From the IMG/VR virus record IMGVR_UViG_3300017971_000185, positions 310,001 to 374,000 of that record: a DNA stretch of 64,000 nucleotides; one strand, given 5' to 3'. Below are positions 32,902 to 57,641 of this stretch, one piece after another (positions within the stretch are counted from its first letter, which is position 1; each line of letters begins with the position of its first letter). The notes below the pieces were generated by a model. It ran no database searches. It was not told where the DNA came from and was given only the letters and a program-made list of their open reading frames with translations. The position numbers and the translations under genes were made by a program.

Positions 32902-33049
32902 GGGAGACACAGGATCTCGTTTCGAGGTCACAAGCACGGTAAGACGCAGCATTCATAACGCTGAGACTGTGGGTTCAATCCCCACCCCCGCTTTCATGGC
33001 GGGGTAGTCAAATCGCAAGAACACCTGACACACTCTCCTGTGTCCTCCC
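32902..33049 (+). ncRNA. Y-like RNA: tRNA mimic opened in the D loop, acceptor stem closed, CACAAGC/CACTC module
   Basis: Outer stem GGGAGACACAGGA/TCCTGTGTCCTCCC; order 3' D strand, anticodon arm (CAT), T arm, CCCCGC-loop-GCGGGG, 5' D strand. Confidence 0.75.
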
Positions 33050-33094
33050 GACCCTTCCAGACTTCAACCCGCAACCCGAAAGGAGGACAATCTG

Positions 33095-33220
33095 ATGCCT
33101 GACGATGATGACGATGACGATGATCGCTTGCCCGCGTTGGTGAAGTCTGGTCTATCACGCTTGGTTGTCAGCCAAGAGGTCATGGGTTCAAATCCCATAC
33201 GCGGGGCTGGAGGTCCGTAA
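33095..33220 (+). CDS. leader peptide MPDDDDDDDDRL..., reading through tRNA-Asp
   Basis: SD AAGGAGG; 8 consecutive GAC/GAT codons ending 6 nt before tRNA-Asp. Confidence 0.8.
   Translation: MPDDDDDDDDRLPALVKSGLSRLVVSQEVMGSNPIRGAGGP
33131..33206 (+). tRNA. tRNA-Asp(GTC)
   Basis: Cloverleaf, loop TT-GTC-AG, G73. Confidence 0.9.
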
Positions 33221-33284
33221 CTCAGTTGGTCAGAGTGCCGCCCTTACAAGACGGAAGTCGCCGGTTCAACTCCGGCCGGGCCTA
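33211..33284 (+). tRNA. tRNA-Val(TAC)
   Basis: Cloverleaf, loop CT-TAC-AA. Confidence 0.88.
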
Positions 33285-33325
33285 CAAAGGAAGGTTTTGG
33301 AGTATATACAGGAAGGAGCGAAACC

Positions 33326-33865
33326 ATGAACGGAGAAGCATTTGCATTTTCCGACGAATCGCGCAAAGCTCAGTTTGGCGCGACTAAAGTCTGTTCTAGG
33401 TGTCGTAGGGAGCTTCCTGTTGCCGACTTTTCGTATGCGAGCCGTGTAAAGCTCTATGCCTGGTGTCGCGACTGCGCACGGACTTATCAGCGGGAAGTCT
33501 ATCGGACGTTTGAGGGGCAGATGAAGCATCGGGTTCGTGCGGCGCGAGGAAGGGCTCAGCGATTTGGTTTAGATTTCGATCTTGCCGTTCAGGATCTTCT
33601 TGAGTTGTGGGACGAACAGGACGGGAAGTGTGCAATTTCAGGATTGCCCATGGTCATCGATAGCGAAGAGGAGAAAGGGAAGCAAGCGTTTCGTCCGTCC
33701 GTTGACCGCATCGTTCCGAAACGCGGATACGTTCGGGGGAACATTCGGCTGGTGACGACTATCGTAAACTTCGGGATCAACAAGTGGGGTCTCGATCCGT
33801 TTCTTGCCATGTGCGAAGGTGTTGTTCAAACCATAGGCGAAAGGAAGGCATACCATGACTGTTGA
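33326..33865 (+). CDS. HNH-like endonuclease
   Basis: CSRC..CRDC; GKCAISG..PSVDRI....GY..GNIRLV..VN. Confidence 0.75.
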   Translation: MNGEAFAFSDESRKAQFGATKVCSRCRRELPVADFSYASRVKLYAWCRDCARTYQREVYRTFEGQMKHRVRAARGRAQRFGLDFDLAVQDLLELWDEQDGKCAISGLPMVIDSEEEKGKQAFRPSVDRIVPKRGYVRGNIRLVTTIVNFGINKWGLDPFLAMCEGVVQTIGERKAYHDC

Positions 33866-35747
33866 AAACCTGGGGCCTGCTGAAAAGATCATCCAAGCTC
33901 TTTTGACGCACACGGACCATCTCTACCACAACCGACCGGGAATCGTGGTTGCCGACCGGCGTACCACGACTGGCGTGCGGTGGGATCCTGTCACGTGGAA
34001 GGCAGGCGAGAACGGTGAGCGTACCGTCTACCGTTTGGTGAAGGCGGGACGTAAGCAGCGTCGTGTCGAGATCGGCACGATGAACGGCGAGAACCGCAAG
34101 ATCATGAAGGACGGAGCCGAGGTAGGCGAGTACCGTCCGAGCGGCTTGTACCCCGAAGTCGCCATTTGGTTCTACAAGCAAGTTGCCGAAGTGTGGAAGC
34201 TGGACAACGAGTTTGCCGCACGTTGGGCATCGTTCGCGTTCCGTCAGGACCACCGCGATCTCAAGGTCGTTCTGGCCGCCTTCCTCTTGGTCCAGTCGCG
34301 TAAGGGCGATCCCGTCATGGACGGCATGGTCCGTCTGTTCGCGGATGAGGACTACAGGGACGTGGGCGAGGCGATGATCTTGCTCCAAGAGAAGGGCAAG
34401 GATCTCAACCCGAAGCTGTTGCTCCGCATCTGGGAGGTTCTCTCGTTGCCGGAGATCGCGGCTGTCAACCGCGAGCTTGGTTTCGGCAAGTCGGCAAAGC
34501 GTCCATTCCTGGGTCGTTGGAGCAGGGCGGTCGAGAAGTGGCTCCGCTACCGTGAAGAGAACCCGAAGATGCTGGAGGGTCTCGTCAAGGCCGGATTCAG
34601 AACCACGGTGATGACGCTTGCCCGGAAGATCGGCTACAAGCCCACGACTGATCGGTTCTTCGAAGTCCTGCGCTGGAAGCAGAAGCAGGCCGAAGATGGC
34701 CGTCGTGAGATGGCGATTGGCAAGGAAGTCAAGGCGGCCGAGTCTTGGGCGGATCTCGATGAAATGTCGATCTGCGAGATCATCGAGAAGACCAAGCCGA
34801 ATTGGAAGCGGATCGTTGGTTTGCTTCCTTCCGAGGTTGGCGTGACCCGTGCAATCATGGCTGCGGCCATCGAGGCAGGCTCTCTGTCGGACAAGGACAT
34901 CATCATCCTGACGCCGACGTTGGAGGAGCTTGGGCTGCTCAAGGTCCAAGAGATCAAGGAACGTCTCGACTCGGCCCTGGCTCGGGCGAACGACATGCGT
35001 GCGGCCAACATCGCTCGCAACGTCCGTGACAAGGAGACCAAGGAGACGCTGGAGGCGGGTGCCGACAAGGCCGCTCAGAAGGTGGTCGAGGAAGTCGCAC
35101 GCGACATCACCATCGACTTCATCGTTGACATTTCGGCTTCGATGGAAGGCGCCCTGGATGCGGCCAAGCCGCTCATCGCCAAGTTTCTCCAGGCCCTTCC
35201 GGCTGATTACGTCAATGTTGCCGTGTTCAACACGGCAGGCCGTGAGGTCAAGGTCAAGCACAACTCGACCAAGGGCGTCGAGGCCGCTTTCCGCGGCATC
35301 AAGGCCGGAGGAGGCACTGACTACGGTGCGGGTGTGCGGGCAGTCCAGAAGCACGCGACCCCGGAAGGCCACGATCGCATCATGGTCTTCATTGGGGATG
35401 AGGAAGCACGGCCGTTCGATGAGGCTGTGAGGGTGTCGGGTCTCAACCCGGTTGCCTTCGGATTCCTCAAGACGGTTCCCTTCGGAGGAGCCGCAGCGTG
35501 GCGTTATCGGCACTACGGGCCGGACGGCAACATCGCAGTGCGGGAGACGGCTGCTCGTCTCAACATCCCATGCTTCATGATCGATGACCGCACTTTCGAG
35601 GACCCCTACGCAATCACTCGCACTCTCCAGGCTTTGATTGCGGCGACTCCGGTTGGGGAAGTGACTCAGGCTCGTCCGCGTCCGCGCGTGACGCTCGTTG
35701 ATCAGATTCTCAACACTGAGTTGCTTGCTAAGCCCGCATGGGCATGA
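33855..35747 (+). CDS. Ro60/TROVE-like protein with a C-terminal vWA domain
   Basis: Long helical N-terminal region, then MIDAS motifs VDISASM, GGTD and IGDE; TROVE assignment inferred from architecture and context. Confidence 0.65.
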   Translation: MTVENLGPAEKIIQALLTHTDHLYHNRPGIVVADRRTTTGVRWDPVTWKAGENGERTVYRLVKAGRKQRRVEIGTMNGENRKIMKDGAEVGEYRPSGLYPEVAIWFYKQVAEVWKLDNEFAARWASFAFRQDHRDLKVVLAAFLLVQSRKGDPVMDGMVRLFADEDYRDVGEAMILLQEKGKDLNPKLLLRIWEVLSLPEIAAVNRELGFGKSAKRPFLGRWSRAVEKWLRYREENPKMLEGLVKAGFRTTVMTLARKIGYKPTTDRFFEVLRWKQKQAEDGRREMAIGKEVKAAESWADLDEMSICEIIEKTKPNWKRIVGLLPSEVGVTRAIMAAAIEAGSLSDKDIIILTPTLEELGLLKVQEIKERLDSALARANDMRAANIARNVRDKETKETLEAGADKAAQKVVEEVARDITIDFIVDISASMEGALDAAKPLIAKFLQALPADYVNVAVFNTAGREVKVKHNSTKGVEAAFRGIKAGGGTDYGAGVRAVQKHATPEGHDRIMVFIGDEEARPFDEAVRVSGLNPVAFGFLKTVPFGGAAAWRYRHYGPDGNIAVRETAARLNIPCFMIDDRTFEDPYAITRTLQALIAATPVGEVTQARPRPRVTLVDQILNTELLAKPAWA

Positions 35748-35754
35748 GGTCGTC

Positions 35755-57085: not shown

Positions 57086-57161
57086 GGGGCACTAGCTCAA
57101 AGGACAGAGCTTCCGGCTTCTAACCGGACGGGTGCGGGTTCAAATCCCGCGTGCCCTACCA
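57086..57161 (+). tRNA. tRNA-Arg(TCT)
   Basis: Cloverleaf with CCA. Confidence 0.92.
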
Positions 57162-57200
57162 CTACTGGGCGGAACCAAGGACGCCGCCCAACGACAACCT

Positions 57201-57289
57201 GGAGCGGTGGCCGAGTCTGGCTGAAGGCATCGCCCTGCTAAGGCGACATACCCGCAAGGGTATCGAGGGTTCAAATCCCTCCCGCTCCG
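57201..57289 (+). tRNA. tRNA-Ser(GCT)
   Basis: Type II cloverleaf. Confidence 0.93.
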
Positions 57290-57298
57290 CAAAATCAA

Positions 57299-57385
57299 GG
57301 AACGGTGGCCGAGTCTGGCTGAAGGCGCTCGACTGGAAATCGAGTGTAGGGAAACCTACCGGGGGTTCAAATCCCTCCCGTTCCG
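57299..57385 (+). tRNA. tRNA-Ser(GGA)
   Basis: Type II cloverleaf. Confidence 0.93.
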
Positions 57386-57402
57386 CCCGAAAGGAGAATC
57401 TA

Positions 57403-57493
57403 GGAGAAGTGGCCGAGTCTGGCTGATGGCACCTGATTTGAAATCAGGCGTGGGGAGATCCCACCGGGGGTTCGAATCCCTCCTTCTCCGCCA
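57403..57493 (+). tRNA. tRNA-Ser(TGA)
   Basis: Type II cloverleaf with CCA. Confidence 0.93.
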
Positions 57494-57641
57494 TGCGTAT
57501 CCAACCGACTAAGCCCTACAAGCACTGTAGCGCGGTGGTTCGAATCCACCCTCCTCCACTCTACGGGGGAGTAGCTCAGAGGAAGAGCAACAGACATCCA
57601 ATCTGTGTAAGCAGCAAACAGGCTTACCACTCGGATACGCA
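57494..57641 (+). ncRNA. Y-like RNA type C3 (permuted tRNA mimic)
   Basis: TGCGTATCC/GGATACGCA; AAGCC-CTACAAGC..GGCTT-ACCACTC; T arm first, closed acceptor CTCCTCC/GGGGGAG. Confidence 0.8.

Follow-up and report, generated by a model that had tools for sequence, protein, structure and literature searches.

A 64,000-nucleotide stretch of the IMG/VR virus record IMGVR_UViG_3300017971_000185 (a 497-kb contig; positions 310,001 to 374,000, referred to here as the window) encodes nine small RNAs that share one two-helix module, the handle. The handle occurs alone or joined to a tRNA-like body, and the point at which the two are joined differs between the copies. The module and its layouts are conserved, with covarying helices, in 189 full-length relatives from 45 sources (the window and 44 loci, drawn from Virus Rctr197k and huge-phage contigs), and the RNAs are linked on the same strand to a cassette of five genes led by a gene for a 630-amino-acid (630-aa) protein. 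The explanation towards which we lean is a Y-RNA-like system, in which the handle would dock a protein of the cassette, most likely the Ro60-like 630-aa protein, and the body would engage tRNA-binding factors from different attachment points. Loci are cited below by number where they have to be told apart; L002 is the window itself (100% identical).

Architecture of the handle and of the nine elements

The handle consists of a closing helix P1 of 9–12 bp, a small internal loop and a helix P2 of 8–9 bp that is sometimes bulged. Past the 5' strand of P2 the sequence reads (Y)ACA(A/C/U)GC, and past its 3' strand (P2') it reads N-ACUC, after which the returning strand of P1 (P1') begins. The internal loop measures about 3–5 nt by 4–5 nt in a wider alignment of relatives and reads A-N-N(-N) on its 5' side. 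Letters fixed across the families are ACANGC, N-ACUC-G(G) and the C-G pairs that end P1, together with the tRNA-like letters GGUUCGAnUCC of the T loop and GG of the D loop. All nine copies, as read from the sequence and from single-sequence folds, lie at or a few bases from the positions given in a preliminary description of the window. They are listed here with the bit scores of the covariance models R1, R2 and R3, which are described in the next section.

32901–33049, plus strand: E-type; the opened D loop is where the chain comes in and goes out; capped acceptor, with a T arm and an anticodon-like arm (fold)
38775–38838, plus strand: A-type; the handle alone, with P1, an AAAC loop, P2, CACAAGC, a short insert, UCUC and P1' (single-sequence fold)
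38846–38973, plus strand: B1; an open cloverleaf with a 7-bp acceptor, whose variable arm of ~60 nt is the handle, with P1 capped by a tetraloop (R3, 138.9 bits)
38976–39104, plus strand: C1; the handle closes the acceptor end of a cloverleaf, beginning 2 nt past B1 (R2, 136.9 bits)
39145–39272, plus strand: B2; second B-type copy, anticodon-like UAC (R3, 125.3 bits)
39275–39405, plus strand: C2; second C-type copy, beginning 2 nt past B2 (R2, 127.9 bits)
39413–39556, plus strand: D1; D-type with a capped 7-bp acceptor (R1, 165.3 bits; partial match to Rfam YrlA)
39615–39763, plus strand: D2; second D-type copy, with an 8-nt anticodon-like loop (R1, 185.5 bits; partial match to Rfam YrlA)
57493–57642, plus strand: D3; a D-type copy that has diverged and lies between tRNA-Ser genes; past P2 it has an additional small hairpin (R1, 66.3 bits, E=4e-16)

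Folds and covariation agree with the earlier proposal that a single module is attached at the acceptor end (C), in the variable region with either P1 or the acceptor capped (B and D, respectively) and in the D loop (E). The D-type order from 5' to 3' is P1, P2, ACAAGCA, T arm, capped 7-bp acceptor, D arm, 5-bp anticodon-like arm, P2', CACUC and P1'. The B and D types are exact circular permutations of each other. D-type sequences permuted at the acceptor cap align to B-type sequences with scores of 1.5 to 12.5 in five of six pairs and −2.0 in the sixth, compared with −2.5 to −11 for the unpermuted sequences and about −7 ± 4.4 for shuffled controls. The compensatory changes between paralogs that had been noticed before are also present, for example in P2, where CACC/GG.UG in B1 is replaced by CAAC/GUUG in B2. 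The anticodon-like loop of B1 is UUUUCCA. In L004, L008 and L005 the arrays begin with orthologues of the A-type element whose insert holds an additional hairpin. The handle of the E-type element comprises P1 (GACACAGGA/UCCUGUGUC), loops UCUC/ACUC, P2 and CACAAGC, and R1 matches the element weakly at full length (32942–33045, 26.4 bits). The evidence for the E-type layout consists of its single-sequence fold and two relatives, in L008 (~2770–2930) and L005 (~7435–7600), in which P1 and the T, acceptor and anticodon stems have changed in a compensatory manner.

Some details of the preliminary description were revised. Its statement that the single-stranded motifs stay constant while the helices covary applies across the families, with the exception of the 3' motif of the A-type element, which is UCUC and not ACUC. 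The last 3–4 nt of the linker drawn between P1 and P2 pair with the first nucleotides after P2', so P2 is longer than drawn. In the C-type, the AGC of ACAAGC opens the acceptor stem (A.A at 1:72, then G-C and C-G). An analogous 2-bp mini-helix AGC/GCA may be considered for the D-type, but its UCAA variants show no compensation. The 5' linker (CAGA/CCGAA) was also considered as a counterpart of GNCGAAN0-1G, the Rsr-binding motif of YrlA, and was rejected; its letters pair in P2 and are not conserved in the wider alignment.

Relatives and covariation

Covariance models were built from D1 and D2 (R1), from seven C-type sequences (R2) and from six B-type sequences (R3). They were searched against Virus Rctr197k and a non-redundant subset of 61 huge-phage loci (59 for R1 and 52 for R2 and R3), the 61 loci having been retrieved through the neighbouring 630-aa protein.

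R1, D-type: 44 full-length matches at E<1e-6; 95.1% of cells paired, against 33–45% with the partners slid; 37 of 39 pairs change on both sides
R2, C-type: 52 full-length matches at ≥60 bits, above ordinary tRNAs; 92.7% of cells paired, against 28–45% with the partners slid; 33 of 36 pairs change on both sides
R3, B-type: 93 full-length matches at E<1e-7; 93.7% of cells paired, against 37–53% with the partners slid; 32 of 33 pairs change on both sides

Two-sided changes are seen at all pairs of P1 and P2 in the B, C and D families, and none of 500 shuffles reaches the observed pairing values. Since the models served to fit the alignments and the sequences are mutually related, these figures overstate independence, but the margin is very large. 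The bare heptamer CACAAGC is not enriched across the window (14 matches, 9.1 ± 3.3 expected), although seven of its eight plus-strand matches fall inside the elements; the composite structure, judged by the model matches, stands far beyond chance. In the covariance-model comparison suggested in the preliminary description, nearly every pair covaries, and Rfam YrlA is not matched at threshold. Rfam scans at the gathering thresholds and at E≤10 returned partial YrlA matches, considered below, and otherwise no family, with no ribozyme or known motif over the handle.

The five-gene cassette and its linkage to the RNAs

The RNAs are found beside a cassette of five genes whose order and strand are kept in 71–88 of 89 loci in a tblastn survey.

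33855–35747, plus strand: 630-aa protein, beta-rich in its N-terminal part, then with helical repeats and, at the C-terminus, a VWA domain
35755–36684, plus strand: ~310-aa protein (p310), the second cassette gene, after the 630-aa gene in 79 of 89 loci
37250–37636, plus strand: JAB/MPN-like peptidase (Pfam Prok-JAB at E=1.9e-4, under the curated cut-off; weak PADLOC JAB match), in 71 of 89 loci
37626–37883, plus strand: 85-aa protein (p85) with the C-terminus PFGS, between the JAB and E1-like genes in 77 of 89 loci
38076–38729, plus strand: ThiF/E1-like adenylyltransferase (Pfam ThiF at E=3e-25), closing the cassette immediately upstream of the array of RNAs; found in 73 of 89 loci

An HNH endonuclease gene (36681–37253) is inserted in the cassette of the window and is found in just 11 loci. 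The p310 protein has no match in Pfam, PHROGs or PADLOC, and none of its 1426 homologues carries a Pfam domain; NCBIfam, PHROGs and PADLOC return nothing for the 630-aa or the ~310-aa protein. The E1-like protein matches Uba4, MoeB and ThiF in the PDB and the E1-E2 models of PADLOC. Prok_Ub is a faint Atlas lead (score 0.55) for the p85 protein, which is possibly ubiquitin-like or a sulfur carrier. In appearance the cassette combines a Ro60-like protein with a module of the ubiquitin-like or sulfur-carrier kind.

Linkage of the RNAs to the cassette is strand-specific. When the loci are oriented by the neighbouring protein gene, 186 of the 189 RNA matches lie on the cassette strand, and in the phage loci the arrays stand 2–8 kb downstream of the 630-aa gene. 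The search of Myxococcota genomes proposed in the preliminary description was productive: species-representative genomes contributed 29 further loci, nearly all from metagenome-assembled genomes of Myxococcota, and most of these loci contain B, C and D RNAs. On many Myxococcota contigs the RNAs lie 100–900 nt upstream of the 630-aa gene and not downstream of the E1-like gene. In four loci (L075, L078, L079 and L081) B and/or C RNAs are found beside the 630-aa gene although no ordinary tRNA lies within 10 kb. The isolate Paraliomyxa miuraensis SMH-27-4 (L086, NZ_JAOVZF010000163.1, a 799-kb contig) carries the cassette and a C-type RNA at ~14090–14260. This RNA has a TTGACA element, lies 2.3 kb downstream of the protein gene and is labelled tRNA-Arg(acg) by ARAGORN. 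That the handle binds a protein, as the preliminary description proposed, may be inferred from this strand-specific linkage to a cassette led by a Ro60-like gene.

The partners of the RNAs might instead be the E1-like, JAB and 85-aa proteins, with the RNAs serving as substrates or scaffolds of a ubiquitin-like or sulfur-carrier relay of the Urm1-Uba4 or TtuB-TtuC kind, or as adenylation targets of the E1-like protein. Sulfur relays built from ubiquitin-like and E1 proteins do serve tRNA thiolation (PMC5349211, PMC2948915). In the window, L004 and L008 the E1-like gene is the immediate upstream neighbour of the array, but in many Myxococcota loci the RNAs adjoin the VWA gene and not the E1-like gene. 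The closeness of the E1-like protein to Uba4, MoeB and ThiF and the conserved gene order also agree with such a relay, although the beta-grasp lead for p85 is just the Atlas score given above, its C-terminus is FGS and not GG, and no thiolase-like (PP-loop) domain was found in p310. A relay of this kind is considered improbable, and the protein favoured as partner in the Y-RNA-like reading is the one encoded by the first gene.

The 630-aa protein

The VWA_2 family of Pfam matches residues 422–516 of the 630-aa protein (E=2e-10), and the MIDAS (metal-ion-dependent adhesion site) pattern D425, S427, S429, T488 and D515 is invariant in 40 family sequences. The AlphaFold (AF2) model has a predicted local distance difference test (pLDDT) value of 80. 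Its top full-length Foldseek matches in the PDB are TROVE/Ro60 structures (9kop, 9l5y and 1yvp; E 1.6e-8 to 1e-5; 480–530 columns), of which 9kop and 9l5y are the Ro60 of Thermus phage phiLo. Fold matches in BFVD include TROVE and DUF2828 proteins, and the best PDB and BFVD alignments span 480–590 columns. In the ESM-Atlas, 67 of the 100 nearest clusters are labelled TROVE. The modelled protein appears Ro60-like in architecture; homology is unproven.

Comparison with Y RNAs

The Y RNAs bound by bacterial and phage Ro60 proteins have their genes close by, within a few kb and on the same strand, and a locus often has several of them (PMC4201824, PMC12135203). Y RNAs are modular, combining a Ro60-binding stem with a tRNA-like effector domain, and also occur in phages (PMC4201824, PMC12135203). 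YrlA contains a T arm, a capped acceptor and a D arm, and its Ro60 stem continues the anticodon stem, with no anticodon loop (bioRxiv 10.1101/312249). It has been likened to a circularly permuted tRNA, possibly derived from dimeric tRNA transcripts (10.1101/312249). Yrn1 of Deinococcus radiodurans has been modelled with the Ro60 stem at the acceptor position and an anticodon-like arm (PMC4201824).

The D-type RNAs resemble YrlA in the order of T arm, closed acceptor and D arm, with the elbow nucleotides, and the E-type does likewise in a modified order. Pairing over the 44 D-type sequences amounts to 100% in the T stem, 93.8% in the acceptor and 94.5% in the D stem. The Rfam YrlA model (RF02553) partially matches D2 (39649–39705, 28.1 bits, E=0.0011, model positions 30–81 of 114) and D1 (39444–39500, 22.8 bits, from model position 29/30 to 81). 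Further points of likeness to YrlA and YrlB are a stem that closes the 5' and 3' ends, several RNAs per locus and an A-type without a tRNA domain, as in YrlB. Like YrlA, the handle RNAs are encoded on the same strand as, and near, a helical and VWA protein and are present in phages. The two differ in where the stem is attached, as the handle leaves the variable region, between the anticodon-like and T arms, and is not an extension of the anticodon stem. The conserved letters are also different, being NACUC on the 3' strand and ACANGC, not GNCGAAN0-1G/CGAA near the 5' end. The topologies B, C and E and the arrays of up to eight units are additional to YrlA. The candidate partner protein differs from Ro60 in having no TROVE domain detectable by sequence, an extra N-terminal beta domain and a place in a five-gene JAB/E1-like cassette.

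The preliminary description had set these RNAs apart from YrlA by their anticodon arm. The contrast holds for YrlA, as a 5-bp arm is kept here, but such an arm is not unprecedented among Y RNAs, being part of the model of Yrn1 (PMC4201824). The C-type shares its topology with Yrn1, with the stem at the acceptor position and the anticodon-like arm between the D-like and T arms. Yrn1 has a partial D arm, a 6-nt 'anticodon' loop and a metazoan-like Ro60 helix, whereas the C-type has a full cloverleaf, a 7-nt loop with U33/A37-like letters and a different handle. No description of the NACUC/ACANGC handle, of the B and E types, of the long arrays or of the JAB/E1-like cassette was found in the literature.

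The tRNA-like bodies and decoding

The tRNA-like bodies are probably not real decoding tRNAs. As noticed earlier, the anticodon-like loops differ between copies, and each type has 22–26 different triplets. A34 is present in 13 of 48 C-type loops, and U33 in 38 of 48 (C), 18 of 33 (D) and 40 of 70 (B) of the 7-nt loops; 8-nt loops are frequent. The stems that carry these loops are conserved and covary, the 5-bp stem of the D-type being 99% paired with five of five pairs covarying and a loop of 7–8 nt. The C-type acceptor stems are often just 3–4 bp long, with A.A at 1:72 in 41 of 51 sequences, and the acceptors of D and E are capped. Only in the B-type is the 7-bp acceptor without flaws (99.7% paired, with G1-C72 in 89 of 93 sequences). 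The unconstrained triplets and the short C-type acceptors with A.A argue against decoding tRNAs. The panel of decoys proposed in the preliminary description is not supported, as the triplets fit a generic tRNA shape better than mimicry of particular tRNAs.

Standard annotation misses the handle RNAs or miscalls them as tRNAs, as the preliminary description had expected of tRNA scanners. ARAGORN calls only the inner parts of C1 (39003, labelled tRNA-Ala(cgc)) and C2 (39303, labelled tRNA-Met(cat)) and none of the A, B, D and E elements, and a handle RNA in L008 is labelled Asp-atc. By the Rfam tRNA model (RF00005), canonical decoding features are lacking and only the same inner parts of C1 and C2 pass as tRNA. 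The B-type resembles class II tRNAs (Leu, Ser, Tyr) in being a cloverleaf whose acceptor has 7 bp and in the helix placed between its anticodon and T stems, but its variable arm of ~55–65 nt has two helices and invariant loop motifs, and it is not recognised at threshold by ARAGORN or Rfam tRNA.

A different account would take the elements as intron-like or permuted tRNA genes, in which the handle is a processing motif like the archaeal bulge-helix-bulge, known from introns, leader-trailer helices and permuted tRNA genes. An endonuclease would excise it, the ends would be joined, and RNase P would open the capped acceptors to give functional tRNAs. The bulge-helix-bulge (BHB) tRNA genes of archaea and red algae do have one module at several tRNA positions, permuted order and capped acceptors, and the distribution of the handle over the acceptor, variable region and D loop corresponds to that of BHB motifs in archaea and algae (10.1101/312249). 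Genes for Tpt1/KptA, a Thg1-like enzyme, an exoribonuclease and RNase P RNA are present in the window, and the perfect B-type acceptor with G1-C72 would suit a tRNA product. However, the junction of the handle has a loop of 3–5 by 4–5 nt between helices of 9–12 and 8–9 bp and not the 3-4-3 geometry of BHB, and a scan of 29 of the window's open reading frames turned up neither a splicing endonuclease nor an RNA ligase domain. The handle RNAs are found in bacteria-infecting phages and Myxococcota, and their bodies are without decoding-tRNA features: the triplets are unconstrained and many begin with A, U33 is found in 55–80% of the 7-nt loops, 8-nt loops are common, and the C-type acceptors are as described above. 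The phage already has a full set of tRNAs. Tpt1, Thg1 and EF-Tu are each linked to the cassette in just 2 of 89 loci, Thg1 and Tpt1 in L022 and L057. Excision to functional tRNAs is regarded as quite unlikely.

Array layout, putative promoter and possible processing

L004, L008 and L005 repeat the window's unit order, A-B-C-(B-C)-D, and more distant phages have up to eight units per array (for example L007, 20161–21378, and L025, 15682–17078). In the 45 sources, B is followed by C or D within 1–9 nt in 45 of 54 adjacent cases. The spacer from B to C is 2–5 nt in 29 of 37 adjacent cases and that from B to D is 1–9 nt in 16 of 17, while those from C or D to B are mostly 5–8 nt. This fixed, dimer-like B-C and B-D grammar suggests coupled end-processing or a functional pair. 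The tight spacing places the open-ended B units like tRNA punctuation between closed units. A promoter-like element stands between the E1-like gene and the array.

38739–38767, plus strand: promoter-like element, TTGACA, 17 nt and CAGACT, before the array

A TTGACA-N17-(T/C)ANNNT arrangement also precedes the arrays in L001, L004, L008 and L086. Because the element of the window does not pass a strict sigma-70 consensus scan, it is taken as a putative promoter on the strength of the conserved TTGACA-N17 arrangement. Among the sequencing runs listed, only DNA runs contain the stretch.

The RNAs might also act without a protein partner, as decoys or sponges for anticodon nucleases, tRNA-modifying enzymes or tRNA-directed defences, the handle being only a stabilising or processing helix such as an RNase III or RNase E site. 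Long closing helices would protect RNA ends, the tight packing suggests processing signals, and the many copies per genome, the diverse anticodon-like loops and the location in a tRNA and translation island are what decoys would be expected to have. Yet NACUC and ACANGC are invariant over ~190 copies while the helix pairs vary, which is unexpected for a purely structural helix. The linkage to the cassette holds where no tRNAs are nearby, and the triplets have no focus on known nuclease targets. Protein-independent decoys are given a low probability.

The Y-RNA-like reading

The RNAs are most likely non-coding and derived from tRNAs, and together with the Ro60-like protein they would represent a new and strongly diversified branch of the Ro60/Y-RNA particles. 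In the Y-RNA-like system proposed here, the handle would be a common, sequence-specific docking site for a protein of the adjacent cassette, and the likeliest partner would be the 630-aa helical-repeat and VWA protein with its Ro60 architecture. The body, which keeps the T-loop/D-loop elbow and a free anticodon, would be a module that engages tRNA-binding factors. In the window the units would be made as one tightly packed transcript from the putative promoter after the E1-like gene, and in other lineages from a position just upstream of the 630-aa gene. The open-ended B units would probably act as punctuation for RNase P and 3'-end processing, releasing the adjoining C and D units; the RNase P RNA encoded by the phage was counted towards this reading. 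The downstream role may be tRNA or RNA surveillance, repair or protection within the phage translation island.

Several observations weigh against this reading. The full-length TM-scores (template modelling scores) of the 630-aa protein with the Ro60/TROVE structures are low (0.23–0.39), Pfam TROVE (PF05731) is matched by 0 of 40 family members at E≤5, and a profile search against the PDB sequences gives VWA proteins only and no TROVE. When modelled by itself, the helical region finds generic alpha-solenoids, Ro60 being among them at E=0.16, and because this is not significant the Ro60 assignment rests on the full-length fold matches. On the RNA side, the YrlA scores are far under the gathering threshold (28 against 69 bits), and the A, B, C and E types are unmatched. 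The known Ro60-binding motif CGAA is not conserved, CCGA(A/G) being present in few copies and inside P2. All loci were retrieved through the 630-aa protein, so that its co-occurrence with the RNAs is not an unbiased statistic, and the true partner could be one of the four other conserved cassette proteins.

The surrounding translation and RNA island

The window is a translation and RNA island with 44 tRNA genes, nearly all on the plus strand (ARAGORN). Other features of the island include the following.

14315–14653: full-length bacterial class-A RNase P RNA, encoded by the phage (247 bits)
24669–25898: full-length EF-Tu between tRNA clusters (GTP_EFTU at E=3.6e-60, with domains 2 and 3)
39767–39859: bacterial small signal recognition particle (SRP) RNA (57.7 bits), 4 nt past D2, the last unit of the handle-RNA array
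48706–49506: Thg1-like 3'-5' nucleotidyltransferase, a tRNA/RNA repair-type enzyme
50142–50663: Rv2179c-like 3'-5' exoribonuclease, a tRNA/RNA repair-type enzyme
59036–59644: Tpt1/KptA RNA 2'-phosphotransferase (E=1e-48), a tRNA/RNA repair-type enzyme

The SRP RNA is probably on the same transcript as the handle-RNA array. Among the tRNA genes, a lone tRNA-Asn with the anticodon att lies on the minus strand (706–781), an odd call at 58101–58173 has a 2-nt 'anticodon' (cc), a 59-nt Rfam tRNA match at 59014–59072 has no ARAGORN call, and another tRNA (3781–3854) is matched by Rfam only. A gene for a serine recombinase with Resolvase and MerR helix-turn-helix domains (18715–19461) is followed by a TnpB/OrfB_IS605-Cas12f-like gene (20182–21609), and the pair is an IS607-type element within the phage tRNA island. 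A homologue of pyruvoyl-dependent arginine decarboxylase is encoded at 49527–50132 (E=4.6e-20). A megablast of 20 kb against GenBank phages gave only tRNA-sized matches, and Virus Rctr197k (KX853510) is the sole annotated relative.

Implications

To our knowledge, no partners of Ro60 are understood less well than Y RNAs, for which just two tRNA-like layouts, YrlA and Yrn1, have been described. The five layouts in one genome and the ~190 further copies in related huge phages and Myxococcota amount to a natural mutagenesis series, in which the fixed letters can be set against a free anticodon and a free attachment point. The series makes both the binding site and the face of the tRNA that is presented directly testable, and the cultured Paraliomyxa miuraensis, which carries the system, offers a route to experiments. 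The cassette adds a JAB protein, an E1-like protein and two unknown proteins that were not previously connected with Ro60 biology. The tandem arrangement of B followed by D or C matches the published hypothesis of an origin of YrlA from dimeric tRNA transcripts (10.1101/312249). It is also conceivable, though doubtful, that the handle RNAs and the five-gene cassette form one undescribed machine, in which the permuted RNAs are thiolated or adenylated, are cut and rejoined, or guide ubiquitin-like conjugation. If this were true, a Ro60-kind RNA–protein particle would be linked to a prokaryotic ubiquitin-like pathway, and the proposed descent of Y RNAs from tandem tRNA transcripts would have living intermediates in the neighbouring B, C and D forms.

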